Source: Bugula neritina (taxonomy: Eukaryota > Animalia > Bryozoa). Taken from it: a stretch of 64,000 nucleotides of DNA. Of this stretch, positions 20,229 through 64,000 are shown one piece after another; positions within the stretch are counted from its first letter, which is position 1; every line of letters starts with the position of its first letter. The stretch lies in the NCBI GenBank assembly GCA_964035545.1, contig OZ037767.1, positions 28,722,628-28,786,627 on the forward strand. The letters are read 5' to 3'. The notes below the pieces were generated by a model. It made no database searches and was not told the origin of the DNA. It worked only from the letters and a program-made list of their open reading frames with translations. The position numbers and the translations under genes were made by a program.

Positions 20229-29205
<8,977 letters not shown>

Positions 29206-38700: not shown

Positions 38701-41700
38701 TTAGTTCTTTGGATTCTTTTAATATTACTTAGACATGAGTACAAACCATGCATTCGCATAAAAGCGGCTGTTAAATCATCTATGTGATTGGCCAGTTCAC
38801 AGAGACAGGAAGTGACCTCATTTACATGCTTCTGCTTCATGCTCCATTGGCATGCCAGCAACGTCTAAAAGTGTATAGCGCAGAGTGCATATTGTTCATC
38901 TTAATTTTACACAGTATAAATATAAATTTATTTGAACAACAATAGAAATATAGTGCAAAAATTAAACTTGGCTATAAACTACACTTGTGGTGAATATGCA
39001 ATAAATTTGGTTATATATTTAGCATTTCGATTTATATATAATTTATATAATAGCTACTTAAATTTAAATTAAATTTAGATTAAATTTAACATCTTTTAGA
39101 TTTACAATAGATTATGTGATTTATAAAATTGCTTTACTTTTAGAACAGGTAATATTTTCAACTCCACGTTGGCTGTTGCCAGGAAAAACCAGTCACATGA
39201 CTTGTCGCCAGGCATACTGTATTTCAGACTCATGTTCCTAGAAGTAAAACACAGCTGTATCTATTATATATGGATCATATTGAAACATTATCCAAGACAA
39301 CATTTTTGTGGTCAGAAAGTTCAGCCACTTACCCAAGCTCCAACGGTTCTGATTGATCTATGTGAACGATGTTGGCCAGAACCAAAGATGCGTGGCATAC
39401 TACTGGTGGTAACTCAACCTTCTTTGATAAATCTGTAAGAGGCATAGCCAACTGTTTTGGAAGAACCTAAAAATATTTTACAATAATAAAATTCTCAGAC
39501 TGAAACTGATAAAACATGGTGAATCAAAACAATGCTTCAAGGTGAGGCAAATATGAGAACACAACTAACTATCTAATCTTAGAAAAGAGTATAAACTCGT
39601 TCCATATCTCCATTCCATGTTAAATCTGTTGGCAAAATACCAGGCTATTGATTGTATAGCCTCAGCTCTTTATAATATATTATGTTCTTATATAGTTCTT
39701 CATAAATAGCCCATGTTTATTTATAGACAATTGCAGAAGCATTGATTTTGTATGGGTTGAATCTACACTATGTAGAAAATATATAATAATATCATAATAT
39801 CATTGCATATGAAACATTATATGCAATGATATTATGATATATTATGATATATTATATATAATTATTATTATTATAAGATCAAATGCCGAATACTAGTTTC
39901 ATAGAAGTGTCAAAAAGATGGAGTATATTTATAGATAAGTGTAGATTAATCATCAGTTTTTGTATATTTTTAAATGCAGGCCAAAGTTTTGGTTACTGAA
40001 AATTTGCATAAACTCCTTTGCCACGTGTTTCAATAAAAAAGAGCCTCATGAAAGGTTATTTCAAGTGTGTACAATATGATTAAAATTATATTATAATAAT
40101 TGTGTTAAAATTTAAAATGAAATGTTCCTTTCATTCATCATTCGATATTAAAGTTATAAATTTATGTGTGTGTAGCACACATAAAGAGGTTTACAGGCCT
40201 ACGCTGTGTTACCAAGACTCTGCACTGCTACATAATTAAAGTGTTGTTCATATTTTGCAATAAAACTAAGTAAACTTAATAAACCAGTTGAGGGAAAGAG
40301 TTTGCTATGGCAAATCACCATACCTTTGGTGCTTGGGATTCCCCATCTTGCCAGACATAACCATTTGTTACAATAGAATATAACATATGAGCATGTCTTA
40401 GTATCTCGTATTCAACAAGATCTCCTGTGTCAATTACTGGTAACTACAAACATATAATATTATATTTGATATAAGACACCAAAATGCTATAGTTTAGCGT
40501 AGGGCCACTCAGGGCGTATTTTCACAGATGAAAATTTGTACCGCAAGTAGAAAAAAGTATCCACTTTACACGAATTTCACGAGTTGAGAATACTGAACGA
40601 CAAGGGCGAATATTTTCTGTCGTAGTTACCTAATTGGCTGGTAGTTATTTAGCGAGCCCATTTTTCTTAATTTAGTGCTACATTCCACTAAACTGCATTT
40701 TATTGAAAGCAGTTAGATTTAAAAATGAAAATTTTAAATTTATCCCCGCACATGTAGCCATAGAAACAAAGCGAGCAGTAAAGTTAAATGCAAATACTGA
40801 CACAACGTTGCGTGTACAGCGGACACTTTTTCTACTTGTGGTGCAAATTTTCATCTGCGAAAATATGCCCGTGTGGCCCTATGCGTAGTTGTAAATATAT
40901 ACAAGCGATACACATATTTATATTAATGATTATAAACTACTTACCTCTACACTACGCTAAACTGTTTGTTACTAAATACGTTGATTTGCTTCTTTGACAT
41001 AAAATGTTGAAATTTTGTGCTCTTGACTCACCTTTGAGTTTGTCATTGAAAATTTAAAGTATGCTCTGATAACGAATACAATACTATGGCTCCATATAAG
41101 CTGCACATTTATGCCTGATCAAAATGCTACATGTATGTTAACTTGTAATATTGCTATGTTAGGATTCACATATTTTAAGGGCGCTTTCGGATTCCCTACG
41201 CGTAGGGAATCCGAAAGCGCCCTAAGTATGCTCATACCACTCATAGATCTTTTTGGTATAAATTCAACAAAGTTATGCTAAACATACAATATCAAATATC
41301 TAAACTTTATTAGTATTACTTCTCACGTGATTTTGTATTTACCTCGTTGATTAAACACCTCAGCTTTTTTTGTTGGACTAGCTGAGCAATATTTCGTAGA
41401 ATATCTACCAAACCATCAAACCTCGATGGCAGCCCTGGCTAGAGAAAAGTACATAAAAAGTCCATTTTTAAACTCATATCATATATTGACCTGAAAAATT
41501 ACAAAATTATGATAATTATCAGAAGCAGTAATTCAAATATAACTGAGCAGGCGATCATATTTCATACCACTGCTTAAAGTTAGTAAGTGCAAGTTACAAG
41601 TTACAAGGTATAAAATAGTTTACCAGCCATGTAGCATTATAATATTATCATAATACTATACAGTCTTTTACACTATTTGAGATAAAGTTACAGCCTAAGA

Positions 41701-41881
41701 GGCACAATTAACTATAGACTTGACCACAAACTGAACCCTCAAACTGAAAACAAAGATAATTTCTCACCACATCAACTAGTAGAAAGCCGTGAGCTGATGA
41801 AATTCTGAATCCATCGAATATTTTCTGAATATATTGCTGTCGAGAGTCAGCAAGACACGCTTCTACCCTGTTGACCTCCAT
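35764..41881 (-). CDS. IDO: Indoleamine 2,3-dioxygenase (IDO2-like residues), 12 coding exons
   Basis: ISSAHGFL; GYVWQDG; VLPKQLAMP...LPPVVCHASLVLAN; WFFLATANVE; PDKFYHELRPYLGGW; GGSAAQ; MRNYMP; LRTNHIQIV (proximal His); GTGG; LIPFLK. Confidence 0.93.
40502..40879. mobile_element. MITE with long imperfect terminal inverted repeats in an IDO intron
   Basis: Left gggccactcagggcgtattttcacagatgaaaatttgtaccgcaagtagaaaaa mirrors right tttttctacttgtggtgcaaattttcatctgcgaaaatatgcccgtgtggccc; flanked by TA on both sides. Confidence 0.8.
41179..41222. mobile_element. 44-bp perfect palindrome flanked by TAA direct repeats (minimal PIF/Harbinger-like MITE)
   Basis: taa-gggcgctttcggattccctacg|cgtagggaatccgaaagcgccc-taa. 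Confidence 0.65.
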
Positions 41882-44755
41882 GACTCACCAATTTAGTCTA
41901 AATTTATTATAAATTTTTCAACTCTTAGCCTGTAATATTATAGAAAGTTCTAACTAAATTACTCTACATAGTTGAAGGGGTTGTTAGGTCTAAACTCTAG
42001 GTTTTGAGAGAATAAATGAGGAAATGTGAATAGTTATATTAGATTTATGCTAAGAGTAAGAACCTAAAGTAGTGTGACCTACCAGTCACCAAACTATTCA
42101 AGATCTCACTTTATAGAGACTGTATGCAGTCTCTACTAATGCTATCAGATTAACTCACAAAAAGTATTTGTGAATTTATAGAACTGTGCAGCCCAGCATA
42201 TAATAGTAATTAGTAATTGGGGACAGCAGTTAACATATTCATATAATATTATGTAACATATCATTATTATTAAACTGTTTATTTGTAAATGTTAAAGTGT
42301 AGGTTACATGATCAAATGCTACCACCTACATGAGTTTTGTTACCTAGCCTCAACGTTTAGGACTTATAATTCAACTTACTTGAAATCTTTAGAAGCCATG
42401 TTACAGAGGCAAGTATTAGTGCCGAATGTGTGACTTAGCTATTTAGGTATATGAAAATCACTCACTTGAAAAGTTTTGGATGACCCAGTTACTGCAATCA
42501 AAAACCGATCATGCAAAACTTGCGTACGCAGTGCATGCCAGAGAATCAACTGCTGAATGCAGTGTCTCTAAGGTCACGTAGTATCAATGTTTGCATCAAT
42601 TAACTTTGAATGTTAGATTATCTGTAAGTTGGACAAAATAGACTGTTGGTTATTATAATAAATATGTTGACGGAAATTTGAACCCACTCCCTCGTGCAGG
42701 CAAAAGCTCTTAGGCTATCCATAATAGAGTTGTAATTGCTGTAGCTGTAGGATTCTAGTGACGTATTTCATACTAGAGACATGTTTTACATTTCTAATAA
42801 ATCACCGTTTTATATTAAAGTTCACTCTACAGATTATTGGAGTTGTGCCCCTAATTAGTAGGTTGGGGTCTCAACAACAGAGAACGCAAGAAATATGATA
42901 AACTGGTAAGAAGTTATGATTGTCTAACCAATTTACTTCATGAATTGTAATTTAATGGCTAAAGTTGAAATGGAAAGTAGATTTTTTAAACTATGGGCTA
43001 AATAATTAAAGTGGGACTAGCTAAATTTGGAAATTGTAGTGTTGCCTTGTTTACAGAATGTACAGGATTATATTATGTCCTAGCTTTTGCTTTAAAAGCT
43101 TTTACAATGAAAAGCTGCCACAAAAACACATCTGCTAACTTTAATATTTCTGATAAATTCCAGACATGTGTTGGTTGGTGAGTTATAGCATACGAATAGT
43201 AATAAATGGCCTTCAGTTTAAAGGGTCATAACTTGCATACTCTGCGTCTGTTGGGTTCACACCATCATATTCTCATTAATCAACATCAAAATATAACAGT
43301 GACATAACCTAAAAGCTAGCTGAGTTCCATCACCATGGAAACTACTAAACACAGTGTCTCTTATACCATAGTTTAGCCACCGATTAGAAAATGAGAAGAT
43401 AACTCCAAAGTTAACAATGGTGAATGAGTGAAGATGTATAAGTGAAATTATGTTGATATTTTTCTTTAAACTCAGCAGCTGCTCAATATTATGTAGATAT
43501 ACGTATGTGAAGTCATGGCACAGTTAACATTGGAAAATGAGTTTTGTGGAGAAAACACTCGGTTTTATGGACTATGCATTTGAAATATAATGTTCAAATA
43601 TGTATTTAGCATCAGGCAGGACTACAGCAGCAGTCAAGGCAAGAAGAAATATATTTATAATATTTAAAGCTTTTAAAACCATGTTATTTTAGAATGATTT
43701 TGTTCTGGAAATATTTTGGATATGAAACAGTGTTGAGAATTGCATTGAGAATATAACTCCATCTATAATCAGTTCACCTAGATAAAATAACTTTCAGCTT
43801 TTATTTTTAGCAAAACAGTTACTAGCTTATTAAATACATAATTAAATATATTTCTTACAAGTATGACATGTTAATCACAGCTTTAAAACCATATAAACTT
43901 GGGTTTTAGTCGAATTGAAAAGTAGAATATTAGTAAAATTAATAAATGTTTTATATATTATTCAGCTTGCTACTTTTTCAATTTAAGTTGCAATAACAAG
44001 TTTCAAACTTTTAAAGTTATCTATGCATTATTCTGCAATTGTTTATTAAGTTTATAAGGAAGATTATAATAATATTTAGAAAATATCATTTAAATATAGA
44101 GTTGTCTTCTCATCAAGCAGAGTGCATATGCCAGAATAAAGGCTAGATAGTAGTTACAATCCCTAAAACTTAAGCAACCAATATTAATGACAATCATTAC
44201 ACACATGGCAATTACACCAAGAAGTTATAAGGGTAAATCGTCATTATTTACTTCAGCATAGTTACATATGGAAACTAGCACAATTTTCATCATCATTATA
44301 ATAATTATTGTATTACAGACTGCAGTCACATATTGGCAACAAGCCAACAAACATAAATGAATATGGATGCATTAGGAATGAATAGCTATGTATATGAATG
44401 GATTTCCCCAAAGTACAATGATGAGTTAATTTGAGCCGGGTAGAGGAAGTCTTATTTTTGTGTTATCAGTTAGCTTGTAGGAGTTAGTTGATAACATAAA
44501 TATTGGGCTATTTACTTTGCCAGCTGCATATTGCATTATGCATTCCATGTTATGAACAATAGTTTCATTTAAATTAGCCTGCAATAACACTATGTGTTTA
44601 AAAACTTTATTGACTTGAATTTATCAGTAACAAAAATACAATCAATATGCAACTTTGTAAATAAGTTATCTGAAGAATTAAAGTTACGCAAAATCTGATC
44701 AAGAATTAAATTTAATATTATTCCAAAACAACTAAGTTAGAGGTTAGTTCCATAT

Positions 44756-44935
44756 TCAAACAGTCCCCACATTAGCCGTAGCAGAGGTCCCAAGTCCATA
44801 CTTCCGTAGATAAATCTCAATCATCCTTTCCCACTGACTTCTGGTACTCTCTGCTGTTTCATGAACCTCCTCAAACTCTACTACTTCTGTACCTCCATCA
44901 TAGGGTTGGTGCAGGTTGTCCAGAGTGTCCACCAT
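44756..44935 (-). CDS. 59-aa acidic microprotein, copy 1 (MVD type); 5'UTR exon ends at 46136
   Basis: tttcag acceptor 11 nt before the ATG; in-frame stop upstream after splicing; AATAAA about 150 nt after the stop. Confidence 0.7.
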   Translation of the reverse strand: MVDTLDNLHQPYDGGTEVVEFEEVHETAESTRSQWERMIEIYLRKYGLGTSATANVGTV

Positions 44936-45019
44936 TGCTATAATAGCTGAAATACAAATACTTATAGTTGTATAGTTGTTACTAATTCTATTGTAAAATA
45001 CTAACAATTGGTTAACAAT

Positions 45020-45801
45020 CACCGGCTTTCCATGGACCGATCTCAGATCGATCTCAGCGAGATCGATCCATGGAAAGACACCAAAGATCGATCTCAATCG
45101 ATCTGAGCTGGTCGGTCTGTGGAGCTCGAACTCAGATCGATCTCATGTCAATAAGACCATGGAAAGACGCCAGATCGATCTGAGAAGTAGAAAAAGACTG
45201 CGCGCTACAATGTTGTCTGCTAATAAAAATGATAACTTATTGATAATTACTAAACAAAGACGTATTAAATAATTATGATAGCCACCTTTTTTAGATGCCA
45301 AAACTTTGACTTTCAGTACAATGATTAAGAAAACTCAATTATATGCAGTAGAAGGTTGAAAAAAATAAGAGAATTTAAATTGAACTTAAATGACTATTAA
45401 AACTTAGTTTCATTAGCTATTTTCTTTGTGATTTTAAGCCTAACAGTCCTGTAAGTTTATTAATAATCTGCAAGACAGCCATTAATTTTATATAAGCTGC
45501 CAAGCTAAAAAATTAAAATTAATTATTTTAAATTGGCCAAATTATCATACACTGAAAGCTTTGCTGCGTATAGTTTATATCTGGGATTAAATTTTAGACT
45601 AGGAGCATTTTGTTTTCAACAGTAGTAGCTTTAATCACTCAAATAGGTGAACAAATTATACTTTTAAAGTATCCTTCACTTAAGAGGAGGCAACTTCGCA
45701 AGATCGATCTGACGCTTTCATGGAAAAACGGTCGATCTGAGCACATTTCTCAGATCGATCTCGCTGAGATCGATCTGAGATCGGTACATGGAAAGCCCGT
45801 G
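45020..45801. mobile_element. 782-bp non-autonomous DNA transposon (CAC...GTG ends, AAT target duplication) in the intron of copy 1
   Basis: TIR cac(c/g)ggctttccatg; subterminal agatcgatct repeats; empty site ttaacaatataaaa visible in the paralogous copy at ~56445. Confidence 0.9.
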
Positions 45802-47299
45802 AATATAAAATATAACAACTGCTTATATACAAGAAATATTCCATCATCCTAAACCTTAACATTCTCATGATGCATGTTAAGAGCTAGAAGGGAACAACAA
45901 AATAAACTACTTGTTACCCATTTAGTTAACCAAGAAAAGTTTATAGTACCTCTGGTTAGTTGAAATAGGTGAAAGTTACAATGACTAAAGGGGAATGAGC
46001 TCTCAAAGAGACCACCACCCATTTTAGTGATGTAGGAATTATCTATCATATCTAGTGATGACCATAGGGTTATAATTGTATGATACACAGGACGTTGAAG
46101 TGACAATAACTTTCTCACAACTAGAAATATCTTACCTTAGAATGCTGGCTGCTCCAAAATATGTTGTAAAATTAAGAATAATATAATATCTCCAAGAGCA
46201 GTACAATGGGTAAGTGTTTCTCTGCTATGACTTATAATGCTTCTGATGTAAAGATTGTAACACCGCCTAATTGAATATTAACCTTGAATGTTTTTAGCCT
46301 ATCAAATGCAAGTCGAAATTTCACAACAGTCACAGATTATCAACTAAATGTTGATAATTTATAGCTTAGTATTGACTAGGTCAAAAAAAGGCAACACAGT
46401 CATAAATTGCCATAGCATTGTATGACTGCAGTACATGACAATAGCTATTATAAGTACAAATTCTCATTTGGCAATTATAGTGTTGACCTAGCTTTTGTTT
46501 AAAGAGTTTTTACAATGAAAAGCTGCCACAAAAACACATCTGCTAACTTTTGATATTTCTGATAAATTCCAGACATGTGTTGGTTGGTGAGTTATATTGA
46601 AAAGTAGAATATTAGTAAAATCAATAAATGTTTGAAATTTTTCCTTTGAGATAAATGTATTATATATTATTCAGTTTGCTGCCGTTTCAATTTAAGTTGC
46701 AATAGTAAGTTTTTAGCTTTTAAAGTTATCTATGCATTGTTCTGCAATTTTTTATTAAGTTTATAAGGAAAATTATACTTGGAAAATTATTATTTAAATA
46801 TAGAGTTATCTTCTCAGCAAGCACAGTGTATATAGCAGAATAAAGGCAAGATAGTAGCTACAATCCCTAAAACTTATGCAACCAATATCATTACACACAT
46901 GACAATTATGCCAATAAGTTATAAGGGTAAGTCATCTTTACTAACTTTAGTTTAGTCATCTAATTCTTGTGAATATTGGTTTAAATAGTTTTAATTAATG
47001 CTAGTGAAACACATACAGCCAACCATATCATAGTTTATTGCAACTAGCATAATTTCATCATCATTATAATATTGTATACCACAGATCAGCGGAGTGACGT
47101 AATGGCAACAAGCCCAACATACAATAAGCGCATGCATAGGAATGAATAAATCAATAATCATGTCCGCTAAATATTGGATTTCCCCGTATAATAGCAAGTT
47201 GATTTGGGCCAGTGAGGAAGTCTCTGTTTTGTGAAATCAGCTGGAAGCTAGCCAACACAAATGTGGATTATCATTTTTATTATCATGCAGACAGCATTT

Positions 47300-47342
47300 C
47301 AGTCTTTTTCAACTTCTCAGATCGATCTGGCGGTTTTCCATG
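47300..47342 (-). mobile_element. Short inverted remnant of the same element family
   Basis: cagtctttttcaacttctcagatcgatctggcggttttccatg resembles the reverse complement of 45159-45200. Confidence 0.6.
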
Positions 47343-47508
47343 ACTACATGTTAGAAACTTTATTGACTTGAATTTATCAGTAACAAAAACACAATTAATA
47401 TGCAACTTTATCAATAAGTTATTATCTGAAGAATTAAAGTTACACAAAATCTGAAGAATAATAGTAAAGATAATCCTAAAACAACTAAGTTAGAGTTTGG
47501 TTCCATAT

Positions 47509-47688
47509 TCAAACAGTTCCCACATCAGCCGTAGCAGAGTTCCCAAGTCCATACTTCCGTAGATAAATCTCAATCATCCTTTCCCACTGACTTCTGGCAC
47601 TCTCTGCTGTTTCATGGACCTCCTCCAACTCTACTACTTCTGTACCTCCATCATCGGGTTGGTGCAGGTTGTCCAGAGTGTCTGGCAT
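47509..47688 (-). CDS. 59-aa microprotein, copy 2 (MPD type)
   Basis: Same structure; donor ~48220, TATAAAA ~48330, polyA signal ~47360. Confidence 0.7.
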   Translation of the reverse strand: MPDTLDNLHQPDDGGTEVVELEEVHETAESARSQWERMIEIYLRKYGLGNSATADVGTV

Positions 47689-48557
47689 TGCTATAATAAC
47701 TGAAATACAAGTGCCCATATAGTTGTACAGTTGATACTAATTCTATCATAGAACACTAACAATTGGTAAACAATACCAATATGACAACTGCTTATATAAC
47801 TATTCCAACATCCTAAATGTTACCATGTTTATGGATATGTTCATGCATTTTATGTGCATGCTAAGGGCTAGATAGGAACAGCAGAATAAACTACTTGTTA
47901 CCCATAACAAAATTTAAACACTTGAAAAAAACAGTCTTTCAACATTTTACACCTACTTTTGACTTAAATTTCTGTCTAATTATCATATTTACTATAATTC
48001 ATAATTTTCTTTAACCAATAAAAGTTTATGGTAACTCTGGTTAGTTGAAATAGGTGAGAGTGACAATGACTAAAGTAGAATGAGCTCTCAAAGAGACCAC
48101 CACCCATTTTAGTGATGTAGAAATTATCTATCATAGCTAGTTATGACCATAATGTTATTGTGTGATACACAGCACGTTGTTTAATGAAAAGTAACTCTCT
48201 CACAACTAGAAATATCTTACCTTAGAATGCTGGCTGCTCCAAAATATGTTGTAAAAGTAAGAATAATCTAGCAGCTCCAAAAGCAGTACAATGGGCAAGT
48301 GTTCCTATCCTATGCTTCTGCTCTCATTTTATATGAAACTTGTAACACCATGAAGTACTAACAATAGGAAAAGGATCCGAGATCTTGGAGCACCAGTATT
48401 GATGACGCCACAAAAGGGATAATAGCCCACAATGCTCACTAGTATGGCAACATGTACAAGTGGTTGAGTAGTTGGGAAATCCTAGAGTCATGCTATTTTA
48501 AAATGAATTTGTTCTGTAAATGCTTTGGATATGAAATGGTATAGAGAATTAAGAATA

Positions 48558-48775
48558 TTTATCTCACCCCTTCTATTTAACTCCTTTTATCTCACTCCTT
48601 CTATCATAACACTTTCATCTCACTCCGGCCTTCTATCTTACCCCTTCTATCTCACCCTTTCTATCTTACCCCTTCTATCTCACCCCTTCTATCTTACCCC
48701 TTCTATCTCACCCTTTCTATCTTACCCCTTTTATCTCACCCTTTCTATCTTACCCCTTCTATATCTCAACCCTTT
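48558..48775. repeat. Degenerate 13-14-bp pyrimidine-rich repeat (ttctatct(c/t)acccc); also at ~50967-51110, 53327-53450, 54920-55040, 57118-57335
   Basis: Visible tandem units whose copy number varies between array units. Confidence 0.85.
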
Positions 48776-49916
48776 TTTCTGTTTTGATTTTAAAGAATGA
48801 TTACATGAAATTTGACAAAAGTAATTCTTAATAATCACTAATGGGAATCTTAGAACATAATTATGTATTTAATTCACGTTTTATTATTCTGTTATAGCAC
48901 TGTTCTATTATGACTTTGTACAGGTAACAATGAAATTAGTAAGAATTTGTCCACATGTTTACCACATTATTTGGTATATGCTGTTATTAAAAGTGGTTGC
49001 TCTCTGTCCTAAATCTTCTTCCAGGAGTTTGTCAAGGAACTTAAGCTAGTCAGTATGCACTCTGTTGAATTCTATCAACTACAATTGTTCTCTGGCTGAG
49101 AGAACTGGTATAGTTATTCTGGTTTTATATTACAAGTGAGGTATCTTGGTAGTTCACTATGCATGAACAGCAATAAGTAAAAACAATAAAAGTCTGCTAC
49201 ATGCAGGTACGTAATATATGCATTGATTACAATTAGTAATAATCATAGTGCTAATGAAAAGGAATTCATAAAAAGGTCTGAAAAAAGCATCTATGACTAA
49301 TATTGGATTTCCCCAAACGAGTGATGGTCATTCTTAATGCATGGGATGATGATGCATGGACACTCTTGAAGCATGGGATGCACATTATACCAACCTTTAT
49401 ATAATAATGTCATTTAAAGTGGTTTATAAATATTGCTTACTTATGCCTGGAATACAGACAGACTAAGTCATGCTAACTAAGTAGTAACTATCTACAGCAC
49501 AACACATAGACTATAATAGAGTAACATTAAGATGGTGGTAGGTATTATAGAGTACTAGTTTCACTTTTTTTGAAAAGAAACCCAACAGCTGAAAGTTTAA
49601 TTTCATTTCTACATATCTAACTGTTGTGTGCTAGGAATAATTTACCTGCTACTATCTATATTTCTCATAGGTCACTCAGTTGTCTAATTTATAAACAATG
49701 CTTTAATGGGGAAATTTAGCAAAAAGCTATTTTAGCTGTATAGTTTCAATAAGAAGTCCTTTTTACATGTTAGCAACTTTATTGACTTAATTCAGTAATA
49801 AAAATACAACCAATGCTGCTAGCTTTAATCAACTTGCAACTTAATAAATGAGTTAACATCTGAAGAATAATATTAAAGATAGTTCCAGAAAACTAAGTTA
49901 AAGGTTGGTTCCATAT

Positions 49917-50096
49917 TCAAACAGCTCCCACATCAGCCGTAGCAGAGTTCCCAAGTCCATACTTCCGCAGATAAATCTCAATCATCCTTTCCCACTGACT
50001 TCTGATACTCTCTGCTGTTTCATGAACCTCCTCAAACTCTACTACTTCTGTACCTCCATCATCTGGTTGGTGCAGGTTGTCCAGAGTGTCTGGCAT
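49917..50096 (-). CDS. 59-aa microprotein, copy 3 (MPD type)
   Basis: Intact ORF with the same splice, TATA and polyA signals. Confidence 0.7.
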   Translation of the reverse strand: MPDTLDNLHQPDDGGTEVVEFEEVHETAESIRSQWERMIEIYLRKYGLGNSATADVGAV

Positions 50097-52272
50097 TGCT
50101 ATAATAGCTGAAATACAAATACTTATAGTTGTATAGTTGATACTAATTCTATCATAGAATACTAACACTTGTTAAACAATACCAATATAATAACTGCTTA
50201 TATAACTATTCCAACATCCTAAATGTTACCATGTTTATGGATATGTTCATGTATTTTATATGCATGCTAAGGGCTAAATAGGAACAGCAGAATAAACTAC
50301 TTGTTACCCATAACAAAATTTAAACACTTGAAAAAACAGTCTTTCAACATTTTACACCTACTTTTGACCTAAATTTTTGTCTAATTATAATATTTACTAT
50401 AATTCATAATTTTCTTTAACCAATAAAAGTTTATGGTAACTCTGGTTAGTTGAAATAGGTGAGAGTGACAATGACTAAAGTAAAATGAGCTCTCAAAGAG
50501 ATTACCACCCATTTTAGTGATGTAGGAATTATCTATCATAGCTAGTGATGACCATAATGTTATTGTGTGATACACAGCACGTTGTTTAATGAAAAGTAAC
50601 TCTCTCACAACTAGAAATATCTTACCTTAGAATGCTGGCTGCTCCAAAATATGTTGTAAAAGTAAGAATAATCTAGCAGCTCCAAAAGCAGTACAATGGG
50701 CAAGTGTTCCTATCCTATGCTCCTGCTCTCATTTTATATGAAACTTGTAACACCATGAATTAGTACTAACAATAGGAAAAGGATCCGAGATCTTGGAGCG
50801 CCAGTATTGATGACTCCACAAAAGGGATAATAGCCCACAATGCTCACTAGTATGGCAACATGTACAAGTGGTTGAGTAGTTGGGAAATCCTAGAGTCATG
50901 CTAGTTTAAAATGAATTTGTTCTGTAAATGCTTTGGATATGAAATGGTATAGAGAATTGAGAATATTTATCTCACCCCTTCTATTTAACTCCTTTATCTC
51001 ACCCCTTCTATCTTATAACCCCTTCTATCTTACCCTTTCTCACTCACCCCTTCTATCTCACCCCTTTTATCTCACCCTTTCTATCTTACCCCTTCTATAT
51101 CTCACCCCTTTTTTCTGTTTTGGTTTTAAAGAATGATTACATGAAATTTGACAAAAGTAATTCTTAATAATCACTAATGGGAATCTTAGAACATAATTAT
51201 GTATTTAATTCACGTTTTATTATTCTGTTATAGCACTGTTCTATTATGACTTTGTACAGGTAACAATGAAATTAGTAAGAATTTGTCCACATGTTTACCA
51301 CATTATTTGGTATATGCTGTTATTAAAAGTGGTTGCTCTCTGTCCTAAATCTTCTTCCAGGAGTTTGTCAAGGAACTTAAGCTAGTCAGTATGCACTCTG
51401 TTGAATTCTATCAACTACAATTGTTCTCTGGCTGAGAGAACTGGTATAGTTATTCTGGTTTTATATTACAAGTGAGGTATCTTGGTAGTTCACTATGCAT
51501 GAACAGCAATAAGTAAAAACAATAAAAGTCTGCTACATGCAGGTACGTAATATATGCATTGATTACAATTAGTAATAATCATAGTGCTAATGAAAAGGAA
51601 TTCATAAAAAGGTCTGAAAAAAGCATCTATGACTAATATTGGATTTCCCCAAACGAGTGATGGGTGGACATTCTTAATGCATGGGATAATAATGCATGAT
51701 AATGATGATGCATGGACATTCTTGAAGCATGGGATGCACATAATACCAACCTTTATATAATAATGTCATTTAAAGTGGTCTATCAATATTGTTTACTTAT
51801 GCCTGGAATACAGACAGACTAATTCATGCTAACTAAGTAGTGACTATCAGCAACACAACATATAAACTATAATAGAGTAACATTAAGATGGTGGTAGGTT
51901 TTATAGAGTACTAGTTTCACTCTTTTTGAAAAGAAACCCAACAGCTGAAAGTTTAATTTCATTTCTGCATATCTAACTGTTGTGTGCTAGGAATAATTTA
52001 CCAGCTGCTATTTATATTTCTCATAGGTCACTCAGTTGTCTAATTTATAAGCAATGCTTTAATGGGGAAATTTAGCAAAAAGCTATTTTAGCTGTATAGT
52101 TTCAATAAGAAGTCCTTTTTACATGTTAGCAACTTTATTGGCTTAATTCAGTAGTAAAAATACAACCAATGCCGCTAGCTTTAATCAACGTGCAACTTGA
52201 TAAATGAGTTAACATCTGAAGAATAATATTAAAGATATTTCCAGAAAACTAAGTTAGAGATTGGTTCCATAT

Positions 52273-52460
52273 TCAAACAGCTCCCACATCAGCCGTAGCA
52301 GAGTTCCCAAGTCCATACTTCCGTAGATAAATCTCAATCATCCTTTCCCACTGACTTCTGGCACTCTCTGCTGTTTCATGGACCTCCTCAAACTCTACTA
52401 CTTCTGTACAGGGGGGTCTCCATCATCGGGTTGGTGCAGGTTGTCCAGAGTGTCTGGCAT
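52273..52460 (-). pseudogene. Microprotein copy 4, frameshifted by an 8-bp insertion
   Basis: aggggggt inserted at 52410-52417 (ctgtac|ctccatc in the other copies) gives an early TAG. Confidence 0.75.
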
Positions 52461-55400
52461 TGCTATAATATCTGAAATACAAATACTTATAGTTGTATAG
52501 TTGATACTAATTCTATCATAGAACACTAACACTTGTTAAACAATACCAATATAATAACTGCTTATATAACTATTCCAACATCCTAAATGTTACCATGTTT
52601 ATGGATATGTTCATGTATTTTATGTGCATGCTAAGGGCTAAATAGGAACAGCAGAATAAACTACTTGTTACCCATAACAAAATTTAAACACTTGAAAAAA
52701 CAGTCTTTCAACATTTTACACCTACTTTTGACTTAAATTTCTGTCTAATTATCATATTTACTATAATTCATAATTTTCTTTAACCAATAAAAGTTTATGG
52801 TAACTCTGGTTAGTTGAAATAGGTGAGAGTGACAATGACTAAAGTAGAATGAGCTCTCAAAGAGACCACCACCAATTTTAGTGATGTAGGGATTATCTAT
52901 CATAGCTAGTTATGACCATAATGTTATTGTGTGATACACAGCACGTTGTTTAATGAAAAGTAACTCTCTCACAACTAGAAATATCTTACCTTAGAATGCT
53001 GGCTGCTCCAAAATATGTTGTAAAAGTAAGAATAGTATAGTGTCTCCAAGGGCAGTACAATGGGTAGGCAAGTTTTTCTCTCCTATGCTCCTGCTCTCAT
53101 TTTATATGAAACTTGTAACACCATGAAGTACTAACAATAGGAAAGGGATCCGAGATCTTGGAGTATTGATGATGCCACAAAAGGGATAATAGCCCACAAT
53201 GCTCACTAGTATGGCAACATGTACAAGTGGTTGAGTAGTTGGGAAATCCTAGAGTCATGCTATTTTAAAATGAATTTGTTCTGTAAATGCTTTGGATATG
53301 AAATGGTATAGAGAATTAAGAATATTTATCTCACCCCTTCTATTTAACTCCTTTTATCTCACCCCTTCTATCTTATAACCCCTTCTATCTTACCCCTTCT
53401 ATCTCACCCTTTCTATCTTACCCCTTCTATTTAACTCCTTTATCTCACCCCATGAAATAAAAGTTAACTAAGTTCTATCACCAAGGAAACTACTAAATAC
53501 AGTGTCTCTTATACCGTAGTTTAGCCACAAAATAAAGAATGAGTAAATAACTCCAAAGTCACCAACTTCACGAATCATTAGCCCATACAAAGCAAATAGT
53601 GAATGGGTGAAGATTTATAAATGAAATTCTGTTGATATTTTTTCAAAACTCAGCAGCTGCACATTATTTTGATCAAAAATTAGTGGATATACGTATGTGA
53701 AGCCATGGCACAGTTTACATCGGAAAATGAGTTTTGTGGAGAAAACATGCACTCACTTTTATGGGTTATGTATTTGAGATATAAGGCTCAAATATATATT
53801 TAAAATCAAGCAGGAAAATTAGTATATTTATAATCTTAAAAGTTCTTAAAGCCCTGCTATTTTAAAATGAATTTGTTCAGTAAATATTTTCGATATGTAA
53901 TGGTGTCAAGAATTGCATTGAGAATATAACTCCATCTATAATCAGCTCACCTACATAGTACAACTTTTGACTTTCCTTCTCAGTAAAACAGTTTCCTTAT
54001 AAAAAGTTTACAAAATTATATACAACTTTTATAAATATATGATGTTATTCACAGCTTTAAAGCCATAACTTGGGTTTCAGTCGAATTGAAAAGTAGAATA
54101 TTGGTGAATTGTCAATAAATGTTTGAAATCTTTCCTTTGGGATAAGTGTATTATACATATACTATTCAGCTTGATATGTTTTCAATTTAAGTTGCAATAG
54201 TAAGTTTCTAGCTTTTAAAAAGTTATCTATGCATCAATTTGCAATTTTTTATCAAGTTTATTAGTTTGTAATGATGTTTAGAAAATATTATTTAAATATA
54301 GAGTTGTCTTCTCATCAAGCAGAGTGCATATACCAGAATAAAGGCTAGATAGTAGTTACAATCCCTAAAACTTATGCAACCAATATTAATGATAATCATT
54401 ACACACATGACATGCCAAGAACTTATAAGGGTAAATCATCGTTATTTATTTCAGCATAGTCATTTTATTTTGTTTAATACCAGTTTAGACAGTTTTACAA
54501 TTAATGCTAGTGAAGCGCACGTATAGCCAATCATATCATAGTTTATTGAAACTAGCATAATTTCCATTCTCATTATATTGTATAATATGCACCTCTGTGT
54601 TAGAAGCATTATTTTGAGCAGTTAATTTGTTACTATAAATTGAACTTTTGAACTCCCCTGAATATAGCCATATATAGCAAAATTTTTGAAGATTAATTAA
54701 ACTTAGCTTAGATAGGCAATTCATTACGTAGCCACTAGTAGCTAAAAATCTCACCAATACATTTCAAGAGTTTTCAAGTGTGACATTTTTGTTGTTAAAA
54801 ACTGACATTTAATTGACTAATTTATTAAAACCAGTAATTTGTAATCTATAATTGAAATGAGTAAAAAAGCTAACAATGTGCACATTTACCTAAATTCTAA
54901 TACATAACATACATCTCGATATCTCACCACTTCCATCTCACCCCCTTCTATCTCACTCCTTCTACCTCACCCCCTTATATTATCTCACTTCTTCTATCAT
55001 AATCCTTCTATCTCACCCCCTTCTATATCTCAACCCTTTTTTCTGTTTTGGTTTTAAAGAATGAATACATGAAATTCAGCAAAAGTAATTCTTAATAATC
55101 ACTAATGGGAATTTCAGAACATAGTTATGTATTTATTACTTGTTTTATTATTCTGTTATAGCACTGTTCTATTATGACTTTGTACAGGTAACAATGAAAT
55201 TAGTAAAATTTTGTCCACACATTCTTTGGTATATGCTGTTATTAAATACGGTTGCTCTCTGTCCTTAATCTCTTCCCAGGAGTTTGTCAGGGAACTTAAA
55301 CTGTCTGGCATGCACTGTGTTGAACTCTGGCTGGGAGAACTGATATAGTTAGTCTGGTTTTATATTACAAGGGAGGCATCTTGGTAGTTCTACCATCCTA

Positions 55401-56199
55401 TCATACTGTAAGAGTTGTGCTCCCGTGTGTAATGTTTTGAATGTGTGCTGCATGCAATAGAGTTGTTTGTTATTACTGCATGAATCAGATGATGTTTGGC
55501 AACTGTATGATGTCATATTCTGTATATATATATAAGATGAAGATTTACAAATATAAGTTAGTTTTTAGCCCTCAACCGAGTGTAGTCTCTACAGCATAAA
55601 TATAATAACTGCAACTTAACACAACATAAAACCGTGCACATCTTGTTTAATACTCGGTGTGTTAGTTTTGTGTAGCAATACCTTAATATTATTCTCTAGT
55701 TTGGTAACATTATTATTGAGGTCTTCTAGAGGCAGGGCACCAAGCAACCAATCAGACGCTTTGTTTCACTTACACCGCCTAAATCAATAATTTGCTGTGC
55801 AGTGTTACTTGTATGCTGTCACTTTGCCAACTAATTATTGCACAGCTTTCATTTTGCGCAGTGTTCTGAATGGCTTAAGGTTACATATTGCATATCTGAC
55901 TGGTGTGTGCTATAGGAATAATTTACCAGCTACTATCTATATTTCTTATAGGTCACTCAGTTGTCTAATTTATGAGCCACGTTTTGATGGGAACTTCAGC
56001 AGAAAGCCATTTTAGCTGTATAGTTTCAATAGGAAGTCCTTTTTACATGTTAGGAACTTTATTGACTTGGCTTATCAGTAATAAAAATGCAACCAATGCT
56101 GCTAACTTTAATCAACGTGCAACTTGATAAATGAGTTAAAATCTGAAGAATAATATTAAAGATAGTTCCAGAAAACTAAGTTAGGGGTTGGTTCGATAT

Positions 56200-56379
56200 T
56201 CAAGCAGTTCCCACATTAGCCGTAGCAGAGTTCCCAAGTCCATACTTCCGTAGATAAATCTCAATCATCCTTTCCCACTGACTTCTGGTACTCTCTGCTG
56301 TTTCATGGACCTCCTCAAACCCTACTACTTCTGTACCTCCATCATCGGGTTGGTGCAGGTTGTCCAGAATGTCCACCAT
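56200..56379 (-). CDS. 59-aa microprotein, copy 5 (MVD type)
   Basis: Intact ORF with the same signals. Confidence 0.7.
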   Translation of the reverse strand: MVDILDNLHQPDDGGTEVVGFEEVHETAESTRSQWERMIEIYLRKYGLGNSATANVGTA

Positions 56380-58475
56380 TGCTATAATAGCTGAAATAGT
56401 TGCATAGTTGATACTAATTCTATTGTAAAATACTAACAATTGGTTAACAATATAAAATATAACAACTGCTTATATACAAGAAATATTCCATCATCCTAAA
56501 CCTTAACATTCTCATGATGCATGTTAAGAGCTAGAAGGGAACAACAAAATAAACTCCTTGTTACCCATTTAGTTAACCAATAAAAGTTTATGGTAACTCT
56601 GGTTAGTTGAAATAGGTGAGAGTGACAATGACTAAAGTAGAATGAGCTCTCAAAGAGACTACCACCCATTTTAGTGATGTAGGAATTATCTATCATAGCT
56701 AGTGATGACCATAATGTTATTGTGTGATACACAGCACGTTGTTTAATGAAAAGTAACTCTCTCACAACTAGAAATATCTTACCTTAGAATGCTGGCTGCT
56801 CCAAAATAATATGTTGTAAAAGTAAGAATAATCTAGCAGCTCCAAAAGCAGTACAATGGGCAAGTGTTCCTATCCTATGCTCCTGCTCTCATTTTATATG
56901 AAACTTGTAACACCATGAAGTACTAACAATAGGAAAGGGATCCGAGATCTTGGAGTATTGATGACGCCACAAAAGGGATAATAGCCCACAATGCTCACTA
57001 GTATGGCAACATGTACAAGTGGTTGAGTAGTTGGGAAATCCTAGAGTCATGCTATTTTAAAATGAATTTGTTCTGTAAATGCTTTGGATATGAAATGGTA
57101 TAGAGAATTAAGAATATTTATCTCACCCCTTCTATTTAACTCCTTTTATCTCACTCCTTCTATCATAACACTTTCATCTCACTCCGGCCTTCTATCTTAC
57201 CCCTTCTATCTCACCCTTTCTATCTTACCCCTTCTATCTCACCCCTTCTATCTTACCCCTTCTATCTCACCCTTTCTATCTTACCCCTTTTATCTCACCC
57301 TTTCTATCTTACCCCTTCTATATCTCAACCCTTTTTTCTGTTTTGGTTTTAAAGAATGATTACATGAAATTTGACAAAAGTAATTCTTAATAATCACTAA
57401 TGGGAATCTTAGAACATAATTATGTATTTAATTCACGTTTTATTATTCTGTTATAGCACTGTTCTATTATGACTTTGTACAGGTAACAATGAAATTAGTA
57501 AGAATTTGTCCACATGTTTACCACATTCTTTGGTATATGCTGTTATTAAAAGTGGTTGCTCTCTGTCCTAAATCTCATTCCAGGAGTTTGTCAAGGAACT
57601 TAAGCTAGTCAGTATGCACTCTGCTGAATTCTATTAACTACGATTGTTCTCTGGCTGAGAGAACTGGTATAGTTATTCTGGTTTTATATTACAAGTGAGG
57701 TATCTTGGTAGTTCACTATGCATGAACAGCAATAAGTAAAAACAATAAAAGTCTGCTACATGCAGGTACGTAATATATGCATTGATTACAATTAGTAATA
57801 ATCATAGTGCTAATGAAAAGGAATTCATAAAAAGGTCTGAAAAAAGCATCTATGACTAATATTGGATTTCCCCAAACGAGTGATGGTCATTCTTAATGCA
57901 TGGGATGATGATGCATGGACACTCTTGAAGCATGGGATGCACATTATACCAACCTTTATATAATAATGTCATTTAAAGTGGTTTATAAATATTGCTTACT
58001 TATGCCTGGAATACAGACAGACTAAGTCATGCTAACTAAGTAGTAACTATCTACAGCACAACACATAGACTATAATAGAGTAACATTAAGATGGTGGTAG
58101 GTATTATAGAGTACTAGTTTCACTTTTTTTGAAAAGAAACCCAACAGCTGAAAGTTTAATTTCATTTCTACATATCTAACTGGTGTGTGCTAGGAATAAT
58201 TTACCTGCTACTATCTATATTTCTCATAGGTCACTCAGTTGTCTAATTTATAAACAATGCTTTAATGGGGAAATTTAGCAAAAAGCTATTTTAGCTGTAT
58301 AGTTTCAATAAGAAGTCCTTTTTACATGTTAGCAACTTTATTGACTTAATTCAGTAATAAAAATACAACCAATGCTGCTAGCTTTAATCAACTTGCAACT
58401 TAATAAATGAGTTAACATCTGAAGAATAATATTAAAGATAGTTCCAGAAAACTAAGTTAAAGGTTGGTTCCATAT

Positions 58476-58655
58476 TCAAACAGCTCCCACATCAGCCGTA
58501 GCAGAGTTCCCAAGTCCATACTTCCGTAGATAAATCTCAATCATCCTTTCCCACTGACTTCTGATACTCTCTGCTGTTTCATGGACCTCCTCAAACTCTA
58601 CTACTTCTGTACCTCCATCATCGGGTTGGTGCAGGTTGTCCAGAGTGTCTGGCAT
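58476..58655 (-). CDS. 59-aa microprotein, copy 6 (MPD type)
   Basis: Intact ORF; donor ~59190, TATA-like site ~59320. Confidence 0.7.
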   Translation of the reverse strand: MPDTLDNLHQPDDGGTEVVEFEEVHETAESIRSQWERMIEIYLRKYGLGNSATADVGAV

Positions 58656-59554
58656 TGCTATAATAACTGAAATACAAGTGCCCATATAGTTGTATAGTTG
58701 TATAGTTGATACTAATTCTATCATAGAATACTAACACTTGTTAAACAATACCAATATGACAACTGCTTATATAACTATTCCAACATCCTAAATGTTACCA
58801 TGTTTATGGATATGTTCATGTATTTTATGTGCATGCTAAGGGCTGAATAGGAACAGCAGAATAAACTACTTGTTACCCATAACAAAATTTAAACACTTGA
58901 AAAAACAGTCTTTCAACATTTTGCACCTACTTTTGACCTAAATTTTTGTCTGATTATAATATTTACTATAATTCATAATTTTCTTTAACCAATAAAAGTT
59001 TATGGTAACTCTGGTTAGTTAAAATAGGTGAGAGTGACAATGACTAAAGTAGAATGAGCTCTCAAAGAGACCACCACCAATTTTAGTGATGTAGGAATTA
59101 TCTATCATAGCTAGTGATGACCATAATGTTATTGTGTGATACACAGCACGTTGTTTAATGAAAAGTAACTCTCTCACAACTAGAAATATCTTACCTTAAA
59201 ATGCTGGCTGCTCCAAAATAATATGTTGTAAAAGTAAGAATAATGTGGTGTCTCCAAGGGCAGTACAATGGGTAGACAAGTGTTTTTCTGCTGTGAGTTA
59301 ATGCTTTTGCTGTCACTTGTTATATAGATTGTAACACCATGGAGGCTTTACACTTTTGAGTTTCCCTTCAGCCTATCACTGCGCGGCATTTCAAATCACC
59401 GTACAACACAGTAATTGTAGGAAGCAGTTCCTACAATTATACTGTGATAAAAGTATTGACTAGGTCAACATGCGACAATACAACCATACCGTTGGCAGTA
59501 TGACAAGGCTGTGACTTGGTGTTTGTTTGTAGATTAGTGGCTATGATAGACTAT

Positions 59555-59944: not shown

Positions 59945-60250
59945 TTTCACATTATATTCACACCTTTCACACCTATAGGGTCGTAGTCCTGCACGGGTGA
60001 CCGGTCTGCAGGTTTCCAATCTCTATCAGCGTCTGCCATCTTTCCCTGTCTTCTGCATCTTCTGGTTTAAGATCCCATTGCTTCATGTCATCTCCTATCG
60101 TGTCCATCCATGTTCGTTTGGGCCGTCCTCTCTTTCTCTTTTCCACTATTTTCAACTCAGTCACATATTTAATATCCTCTTCACTATCTCTCCTCTGCAC
60201 ATGACCATACCACTGAAGTCTTCTCTTCCTCATATGCCTAGACGCAGGTT
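59945..60250 (-). mobile_element. 3' fragment of an RTE-type non-LTR retrotransposon
   Basis: RRLQWYGHVQRR...RKRGRPKRTWMDTIGDDM...DRERW is typical of RTE ORF C-termini; short tgtgaa repeat tail after the stop. Confidence 0.85.
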
Positions 60251-61919: not shown

Positions 61920-62480
61920 TGAACTATTACTATTAGTATTACCATTACTATTAGTATTACTATTAGTATTACTATTAGTATTAGACAATACTAAGTCTAA
62001 TAATTACTATTACTATTAGTATTACTATTACTATTAAGTATTAGTATTAGACTTAGTATTAGTATCATTATTATTATGATCCATTATTCATTACACTTAC
62101 AGTAACACCAACACTGGCAACAGTGTAACTACAAGTACTCACTACTACTACTACTACTAGTACTACTACTAGTAGTTGTACTCAAGTAAATGTACTGATA
62201 CTCATAGTCATACCCATAGTCATGCTGATAGTGATACTCATACTCATACTGATACTCAGTATGAGTATCACTGAGTGATACTCAGTATGAGTATCACTGA
62301 GTGATACTCAGTATGAGTATCACTGAGTGATACTCATAGTCATACGGATTGTGATACTCACTCCCATAGTTAATGTTATACTGATACTGCTTCTCATACT
62401 GATACTTATTGATACTGATAGTGACTGTGATATTCTAATTCATAAATCATATTGATATTCATATTCTACTTACTTTATAG
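61920..62480. repeat. Degenerate 3/6-bp periodic tract with a 26-bp palindromic repeat (62250-62340) upstream of UBE2J2
   Basis: tattag/tattac/atactc runs; gatactcagtatgagtatcactgagt x3. Confidence 0.7.
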
Positions 62481-63360
62481 TTGCTATTAAGTTTAATTTA
62501 ATATCAAAATCTAAACAGCTTTTATTTTCGTTTTTACTCCTTCATTTTAATAAAAAAAATTTATTTGTTATTGATGTTTTAGTCTCAACTCACTGACAGC
62601 TGTGCAATTTTCTTTTTTGATAGTTTTAGTTATTTTGTGGTTCAGTCTGAGTCTGCTCTAAAATAAGGCCTTGACTAAAAATTTCCTTTTCATTTCTGTA
62701 GCCTGGTTTTAGCCATGGTACTATTGATGCTCACAATAACAGTCATAATCATCATGCAAATTATAATTAAATATTTCAAATTTAATATTGAGTGGTTGTA
62801 AAGTAAAAACCCAATAATGGTAATTTAGAACTAAAACTTAGCTAGTAGAACCAACAGTAACCGAAACTAAACTAAAGTGCAACCCTATGACTAACTTTGA
62901 ACGATCCTTATCTATGCACTCTAGCCAACATACTTGTGCATTACTTGCTAATACATTGACATACAATAATCATAACAAAACTCTATGACTGAGTTTCAGT
63001 GATAATACTCCGGATTTTAAAGTGTAGATTTTAGTTAATTTTTGAGGAAAATGGCTGTAATAACAGATCTATTGTGATTATGTTTATTATTATTGTAACA
63101 ATCAATACACTCTGTAGGACTATGAAGATATTCCCTTTATGTTGAGTGAATGAAAATTTTGATATTAATAGTTTGATTTTCATCAAACCTAATATTAAAA
63201 CCAAATGATGTAGACCTATATATTAGAAAACAAAAAGAAGCAAACTATCTTATGGAACTGATCAAAGACTGGAAGTTTCTTGTTTTTATGAATATTTTTA
63301 TTGAGTATCCAGTCAAACTATTGCTTAATGGTGTTGAATAAATACTTTCAAGCAACAGTG

Positions 63361-63898
63361 ATGTTCAGAAAGTCCCCAAAGACCGAAGTAGCTAATCCAA
63401 CCTCAACTAATAGACTGCAAAAAGATTATTGTCGATTGCTTAAAGATCCTGTGCCATATGTAGTAGCTTGTCCAAAATCTGATAATATACTAGAATGGTA
63501 AGGCAAAGTTGTATCAGCTAACATATTATATTTTGTAGTGTCTTATTGTAGTTGTTTTGAACTGTATTAATATTCTTACTTTAATTATTTGACAAAGTTT
63601 AATATAATAAAATAACTTGATGGAACTTTTGAGTGAAACATATGCTCTTTACTATATTGCCAGGCATTATGTGTTGGCTGGACCACCTGACACTCCTTAC
63701 GATGGTGGCTACTATCATGGTAAACTGTTATTCCCAGCGGAATACCCATTTAAACCACCGAGTATTTATATGATAACTCCTAGTGGAAGATTTGTATGTG
63801 ATACTAGACTTTGCCTATCAATGAGTGACTATCACCCCGAGTCTTGGAATCCTTCGTGGTCGACGTCAACCCTTCTAGTTGGTCTGCTTAGTTTTATG
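63361..63898 (+). CDS. UBE2J2: Ubiquitin-conjugating enzyme E2 J2 (Ubc6-like), exons 63361-63497 and 63664-63898; continues beyond the window
   Basis: [16 protein letters not shown]...NILEW|[43 protein letters not shown]...[18 protein letters not shown]. Confidence 0.93.
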
Positions 63899-64000
63899 GC
63901 AAGTTGTAACCCATCTTCTTGAATATAACTTTAGTTCTTTTTCTAATATAGTATGTGATCTTAGTTCTTTATGTAATATAATATGTGATCTTAGTTTAAT

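Follow-up and report, generated by a model that had tools for sequence, protein, structure and literature searches.

A six-copy tandem array of putative genes for a 59-residue acidic protein in Bugula neritina is one branch of a Bugula-restricted family of small genes

A 64,000-nucleotide stretch of the genome of the bryozoan Bugula neritina (GCA_964035545.1, contig OZ037767.1, positions 28,722,628 to 28,786,627, hereafter the window) carries a tandem array of small genes on chromosome 3. A repeat search of the window delimits six direct-repeat units of 2.3-3.9 kb between 44.6 and 59.4 kb, with start-to-start distances of 2085-3927 nt, and six-frame translation places one copy of a short open reading frame (ORF) in each unit, all on the minus strand. 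An earlier note on the bare sequence had described a six-copy array of two-exon genes for a 59-residue protein with five of the six ORFs intact, and this layout was confirmed. Below, "this genome" is the 216-Mb assembly that includes the window, and "NCBI B. neritina" is GCA_010799875.2. The units and their coding sequences (CDS) are, in window coordinates:

44606..46155, minus strand: unit 1, the most downstream; conserved 3' end of exon 1 46136-46155, last base 46136; intron 44947-46135 (1189 nt); exon 2 from 44946; AATAAA 44606-44611
44756..44935, minus strand: CDS of copy 1, 59 codons plus stop, beginning MVDTLDNLHQPYDGGTEV...
47359..48334, minus strand: unit 2; TATA-like box 48334; last base of exon 1 48221; intron 47700-48220 (521 nt); exon 2 from 47699; AATAAA 47359-47364
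47509..47688, minus strand: CDS of copy 2, intact
49778..50739, minus strand: unit 3; TATA-like box 50739; last base of exon 1 50626; intron 50108-50625; exon 2 from 50107; AATAAA 49778-49783
49917..50096, minus strand: CDS of copy 3, intact, its protein identical to that of copy 6
52134..53107, minus strand: unit 4; TATA-like box 53107; last base of exon 1 52990; intron 52472-52989; exon 2 from 52471; AATAAA 52134-52139
52273..52460, minus strand: CDS of copy 4, broken, the frame shifted after codon 14
56058..56899, minus strand: unit 5; TATA-like box 56899; last base of exon 1 56783; intron 56391-56782 (392 nt); exon 2 from 56390; AATAAA 56058-56063
56200..56379, minus strand: CDS of copy 5, intact and more diverged than the other five (I4, G20)
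58337..59326, minus strand: unit 6, the most upstream; TATATA 59326; last base of exon 1 59195; intron 58667-59194; exon 2 from 58666; AATAAA 58337-58342
58476..58655, minus strand: CDS of copy 6, intact

The exon 1 donor, GGAGCAGCCAGCATT[C/T]TAAG|GTAAG, has exactly six matches in the 216-Mb genome, one in each unit. In every copy the AG acceptor lies exactly 11 nt 5' of the ATG, and AATAAA starts 137-145 nt 3' of the stop codon. Introns measure 392-528 nt, with the exception of copy 1 (1189 nt). The entire CDS falls inside exon 2 and exon 1 is non-coding: the final 100 nt before the donor contain no ATG, so that in the spliced mRNA no other ATG would precede that of the ORF, and a TAA within ...CTAAG, read by eye, stands in frame just 5' of the junction, so that the ORF would have no 5' extension in the spliced message. 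All six units and the NCBI B. neritina copies conform to the gene model of the earlier note, with its non-coding exon 1, its intron and acceptor, its ORF and its poly(A) signal. Its TATA-like box for each unit holds for five of them (ATATAA or TATATA, 114-132 nt upstream of the donor) and fails for copy 1, which has none within 220 nt of the donor. Chance can be excluded as the origin of the gene signals, which recur across paralogous repeats and have been retained by the NCBI B. neritina copies as well.

The consensus peptide of the six copies is M[PV]D[TI]LDNLHQP[DY]DGGTEVV[EG][FL]EEVHETAES[IAT]RSQWERMIEIYLRKYGLG[NT]SATA[DN]VG[AT][VA], in which RSQWERMIEIYLRKYGLG is the same in all six. Exactly ten residues vary among the window copies (positions 2, 4, 12, 20, 21, 31, 50, 55, 58 and 59), in agreement with the "about ten" noted before. 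Copy 4 is frameshifted by an 8-nt insertion, ACCCCCCT, at 52410-52417 within the G14-G15 codons.

Protein, profile and degenerate-pattern searches of this genome showed that the array belongs, as one branch, to a Bugula-restricted family of at least 18 small-gene loci on three chromosomes, with six loci on chromosome 3, two on chromosome 5 and two plus eight on chromosome 2. The profile search returned 18 loci, and the degenerate motif pattern had 17 genome matches, compared with one for a reversed control. The loci outside the array are:

chr5:2438510-2438686 (L007:1501-1680): single-copy full-length paralogue
chr5:4125763-4125879 (L022:1483-1602), minus strand: second chromosome 5 member, 40 codons
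chr2:3351744-3395608 (L030-L037): cluster of eight copies
chr2:2623982-2626819 (L028, L029): cluster of two copies

All members carry the motif M-x-[DE]-x-x-x-N-x-x-x-P-x-D-G-G-T-E-V-x-E and an AG acceptor 6-12 nt 5' of the ATG, share the acidic character of the array protein, and diverge completely after the motif; in the alignment of the family (A1), P11 and D13-V18 are invariant. The micro-ORFs of chromosome 2 read MAEP[IT/NT]KNQE[NQ]PDDGGTEVEE..., span 26-48 codons, begin 6-10 nt 3' of an AG acceptor, and end in C-terminal tails unrelated to the helix of the window copies. That helix, W...[IM]..YL.KY, and the length of 59 residues occur only in the chromosome 3 array and at chr5:2438510. 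Counterparts of every family branch exist in B. neritina outside this genome. On B. neritina metagenome contigs, the C-terminal helix has been deleted from some copies of the chromosome 5 paralogue (P0015, P0017). The core that the earlier note called invariant is so within the window; beyond it, the core varies in B. neritina (GSQWER, WKRM, ERMVEIY, YLQKYG, RKDGLG), is loose in the chromosome 5 paralogue, and is absent from 11 other members. Judged from the alignments, the family-wide functional core appears to be the N-terminal P-x-DGGTEV-x-E motif and not the helix.

Several lines of evidence point to selection at the protein level. In an alignment of 11 array copies from two lineages, the CDS is the best-conserved and the sole gap-free segment of the unit, with bins at mean column identities of 0.93-0.95. 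Identity is 0.79-0.88 with 10-38% gaps in the intron, 0.80-0.89 in the 3' untranslated region up to AATAAA and 0.53-0.66 past the poly(A) signal, and goes up again to 0.76-0.83 in the exon-1/promoter block. The ORF is thus better conserved across lineages than its flanks, a comparison that the earlier note had proposed along with the ratio of nonsynonymous to synonymous substitution rates (dN/dS). The latter is about 0.5 among array copies and 0.31-0.38 across lineages for the paralogue at chr5:2438510-2438686, a single gene with a 59-residue product 48% identical to the array protein, whose CDS is 92% identical to its NCBI B. neritina counterparts, its flanks being 75-88% identical. In the codons of the seven invariant motif residues, all seven third positions vary among 14 distinct paralogues, and none of the 14 first or second positions does.

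Some observations weigh against a protein-coding array. Constraint on the array subfamily is weak, the Nei-Gojobori proportions of nonsynonymous and synonymous differences averaging 0.058 and 0.107 (ratio about 0.54), and the variable sites are spread nearly evenly over the three codon positions (13, 13 and 16). Gene conversion could make the CDS look better conserved than it is. The third-position result is partly circular, as four of the 17 loci were found by the degenerate pattern itself, the other 13 having come from the protein search. Furthermore, transcription, splicing and translation of the array genes are inferred from sequence. On balance, the evidence tilts towards a real, expressed, protein-coding family.

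The same features would suit a young ORF that is borne by the repeat, untranslated or functionless, and kept open by recent duplication and gene conversion. Some copy pairs even have dN/dS above 1, one copy is already frameshifted, and other ORFs of 52-91 codons also recur in the array simply because the units are near-identical. This explanation is unlikely, since it does not account for a chromosome 5 paralogue of the same length conserved across two lineages at a dN/dS of 0.3-0.4, for motif codons that change only synonymously among the 14 paralogues, or for a CDS that alone is gap-free among 11 copies and keeps the positions of its start, stop and acceptor.

The closest public proteins are three B. 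neritina entries named "hypothetical protein", EB796_017616 and EB796_017617 (69 aa each) and EB796_013314 (100 aa), which are 91-98% identical to the array proteins over 59 residues. They belong to the same family and to a syntenic locus, and share the acceptor, the stop and the poly(A) signal with the window copies; they differ in the start codon of the model and in that two copies are assembled per contig, compared with six in the window. No domain is assigned to them. The earlier note's expectation that the genes would be small enough for gene predictors to miss did not hold: AUGUSTUS called three NCBI copies and the JGI callers many more, with other start codons. The NCBI B. neritina gene models were made by AUGUSTUS with transcriptome hints (PMC7576161), hints that do not prove expression at this locus. 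The 69-aa model begins at an upstream in-frame ATG that copies 1, 3, 4 and 5 lack, and the 100-aa model takes in an additional exon 1.7 kb further upstream. The 59-aa model is favoured, as the M of M-x-[DE] is the first residue of every paralogue, and the B. neritina models could be corrected to 59 aa from 69 or 100 aa. A literature search by the EB796 locus tags returned nothing relevant.

Alternatively, the ORF might be the first coding exon of a larger gene, for instance one of several variable first exons spliced onto constant exons through GAT|GTGGGA, 11 nt before the stop, or through another donor. GT dinucleotides of partial donor character do lie inside the ORF in all copies, the ESM comparison gives a weak lead (0.84, below the level at which it counts) to a Myb/SANT-like first helix, and EB796_013314 joins a far-upstream exon to the same acceptor. 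However, the donor of that model's additional exon is weak, and the exon is not part of the repeat unit. The stop position is shared by all copies, those of B. neritina included, and by the chromosome 5 paralogue; a conserved AATAAA follows about 145 nt on, past which conservation collapses; and each unit has its own exon 1. Within the 2.4-kb unit there is no conserved downstream ORF, and the next gene is a homologue of indoleamine 2,3-dioxygenase (IDO) with its own structure. A first coding exon is therefore improbable.

Exon 1 was also considered as a spliced-leader (SL) RNA or trans-splicing leader and rejected, the donor being found only once per unit and six times genome-wide, with Rfam blank. 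A tandem small-RNA array (SL RNA, small nuclear RNA, 5S) was likewise discarded: Rfam and tRNA scans of 40000-64000 gave no match, and the leader exon is not reused elsewhere in the genome.

The array protein has 59 residues, a mass of 6.6 kDa, an isoelectric point (pI) of 4.25 and a net charge of about -9. By inspection, the array proteins contain no Cys and their N-termini are acidic and hydrophilic, without a hydrophobic stretch, which bears out the earlier statement that signal peptide and cysteine are absent; the proteins are predicted to be cytosolic or nuclear. AlphaFold2 with alignment A1 predicts one helix at residues 22-47, with block values of the predicted local distance difference test (pLDDT) of 67-89, termini of low confidence and a mean pLDDT of 64.5. 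Hydrophobic residues of the helix stand at positions 24, 28, 31, 35, 38, 42 and 46, at a spacing of 3-4, and its hydrophobic moment is 0.43, compared with 0.21 +/- 0.10 for shuffled sequences, 2.7% of which reach 0.43. The model, the moment and the pI agree with the disordered acidic half and amphipathic helix suggested before, as far as a prediction can.

A tandem array with an invariant "leader-like" N-terminus and highly variable C-termini, in proteins of 26-59 aa across the family, might also be expected of precursors of processed or exported bioactive peptides, for example cleaved at DGG|T into defence or signalling peptides diversified by tandem duplication. We regard this as quite improbable, since signal peptide, Cys and dibasic sites are absent by inspection, no KR or RR flanks a repeat, no processing or modification genes lie nearby, and the neighbours are unrelated in order and strand. 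A secreted precursor of neuropeptide, antimicrobial or toxin-like kind was accordingly rejected upon inspection of all members.

The array lies at a locus that is syntenic between two Bugula lineages, at an assembled copy number of six versus two. Contig VXIV02001955 of NCBI B. neritina (L050) is collinear with window positions 63951-39697 at 82-88% identity and holds two copies, which are flanked as in the window by E2 ubiquitin-conjugating genes upstream and the IDO gene downstream. VXIV02002621 (L010) has the downstream flank in common with the window, at 84% identity over 3.9 kb, and unit 1 is collinear with the last copy on both contigs. By these comparisons the window belongs to a bugulid that is a relative of the NCBI B. 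neritina assembly yet distinctly diverged from it. Unnamed relatives from two Bugula-associated JGI metagenomes comprise eight or more different protein variants, so this assembly is not alone in having a multi-copy array. That the six copies are an assembly over-expansion of a locus with one or two, as the two-copy L050 might suggest, is hardly credible, given the differences between the units (substitutions and indels, introns of 392-1189 nt, an insertion of 1.5 kb in a spacer, the frameshift of one copy), the JGI variants, and the nature of the NCBI draft, which is highly heterozygous and short-read polished and whose arrays may be collapsed (PMC7576161).

With genuine small protein-coding genes as the preferred reading, a mechanism can be proposed. 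The invariant P-x-DGGTEV-x-E in the disordered acidic segment would be a short linear motif through which the protein docks onto a conserved partner in the cell, the heptad-like helix of the chromosome 3 and chromosome 5 branch (residues 22-47) would provide self-association or a second contact, and the tandem copy number would set the dose. This docking mechanism is rather doubtful, and the motif matched no known motif class or partner; when the alignment was searched by eye, no EF-hand loop, CK2 site, B56 LxxIxE, KEN, NPF or TRAF motif was conserved across the family. A broader proposal is possible, if tentative: the loci, at least 18 in number, may constitute a previously undescribed superfamily of bryozoan-specific micropeptides (26-59 aa), all docking one conserved machine via a new short linear motif, with tails and copy number tuning the effect. 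If true, such docking would be a lineage-invented layer of micropeptide regulation, and the N-terminal motif offers a concrete peptide for partner fishing.

DSS1/SEM1 and prothymosin-alpha are small acidic disordered regulators. The array proteins resemble them in size, negative charge, disorder with a short helix and the lack of a signal peptide, an analogy of working principle only, as they have no sequence relation to the array proteins and are single-copy and pan-eukaryotic. DSS1/SEM1 (PF05160) was rejected as a relative, as were Myb/SANT-like domains (PF12776, PF13837), which have three helices where AlphaFold2 shows a single one in 59 residues: none of 12 members matched any Pfam entry at E <= 10 (hmmscan). 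Likenesses to PP1 inhibitor-2 ("KSQKW...YGL"), the central helix of complexin ("IRDKYGI") and helix 1 of the Myb repeat ("IELVQKYG") had no Pfam or PDB match and were treated as chance.

The lineage restriction proposed in the earlier note withstood every search for relatives outside Bugula. PDB sequences gave no match, a word search retrieved only Bugula-derived sequences, and an exhaustive hmmsearch of 1.84e9 representative proteins returned only Bugula small proteins and two long repeat proteins. The latter, P0019 (1784 aa) and P0020 (869 aa), are not homologues, their scores being sums of 9-10 weak matches to repeats of 13-20 residues (RPKDGGSEVN, RQPDDGLTEE). In a scan of metagenome contigs, none of 567 pattern matches was confirmed, and the best ESM Atlas feature score, 0.85, lies under the informative range. 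The family thus has no detected homologue outside its lineage, in collections that hold no other bryozoan genomes.

What is new here is a sharply defined motif, a family of 18 loci, a corrected gene model and a copy-number difference at a syntenic locus. The family itself is new and uncharacterised; its kind, taxonomically restricted small genes in tandem arrays, is familiar, and no long-standing open question is touched by it yet. At the genome level, few animal phyla have been studied as little as Bryozoa, and very small genes are often mis-modelled. As a well-delimited, conserved orphan with a seven-residue invariant core and a variable copy number at a syntenic locus, the family is a tractable case for how micro-genes arise, diversify and evolve in concert.

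The array units probably evolve through unequal crossing-over and gene conversion, as indicated by mosaic identity between them: 48395-48694 and 56954-57253, upstream of copies 2 and 5, are 100% identical, and the introns of these two units are 79% alike. The exon-2 tree of both lineages is poorly resolved and the copies of the lineages interleave, so that it does not separate concerted evolution from an ancient array. The spacer between copies 4 and 5 is long (3.9 kb against 2.4 kb); within it, 53451-55400 contains about 1.5 kb similar to 43076-44264, just downstream of copy 1. In NCBI B. neritina this block lies between the two copies, and it is a relic of the ancestral unit structure. The spacers also contain, upstream of the promoter regions, a 14-nt microsatellite, TTTATCTCACCCCT, in 7-15 copies, whose length varies between units:

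48558-48780: microsatellite tract
50968-51110: microsatellite tract
53325-53451: microsatellite tract
54919-55032: microsatellite tract
57117-57339: microsatellite tract

A second family of tandem micro-ORFs was met 716 kb away, at chr3:29502489-29519112 (L048, L049), where five tandem exons read MAEPDNIQQVVDI[D/V]D.E[DE]W[YFH]VD.QTSYN and run into a GTAAGT donor. Like the array, this MAEPDNIQQVVDIDDEDW... family at chr3:29.50 Mb consists of tandem tiny acidic ORFs just past a splice acceptor and is lineage-restricted. In contrast to the array, it has an acidic-tryptophan motif and no DGGTEV, and its ORF, running into a donor, continues into another exon. Kinship between the array and this family (MAEPDN) was rejected, as hhalign found nothing in common beyond the first four residues (MAEP).

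The window is AT-rich (about 32% G+C). The flanks of the array, assigned by collinearity with VXIV02001955, and the other recognisable exons of the window are:

about 39700-41900, minus strand: IDO gene (PF01231), downstream flank of the array
about 62470-63950, plus strand: E2 ubiquitin-conjugating gene (PF00179), upstream flank of the array
432-746: exon of a rhodopsin-type G-protein-coupled receptor
13473-13787: exon of an M14 carboxypeptidase
28074-28328: exon of an AAA ATPase
32249-32557: exon with a WAP domain

Between the array and its upstream flank, about 650 nt absent from the collinear B. neritina contig hold an 86-codon ORF (59973-60233, minus strand; RLQWYGHVQRR…KRGRPKRTW). It has no significant Pfam match and resembles the C-terminal tail of the ORFs of invertebrate retrotransposons that lack long terminal repeats (non-LTR).

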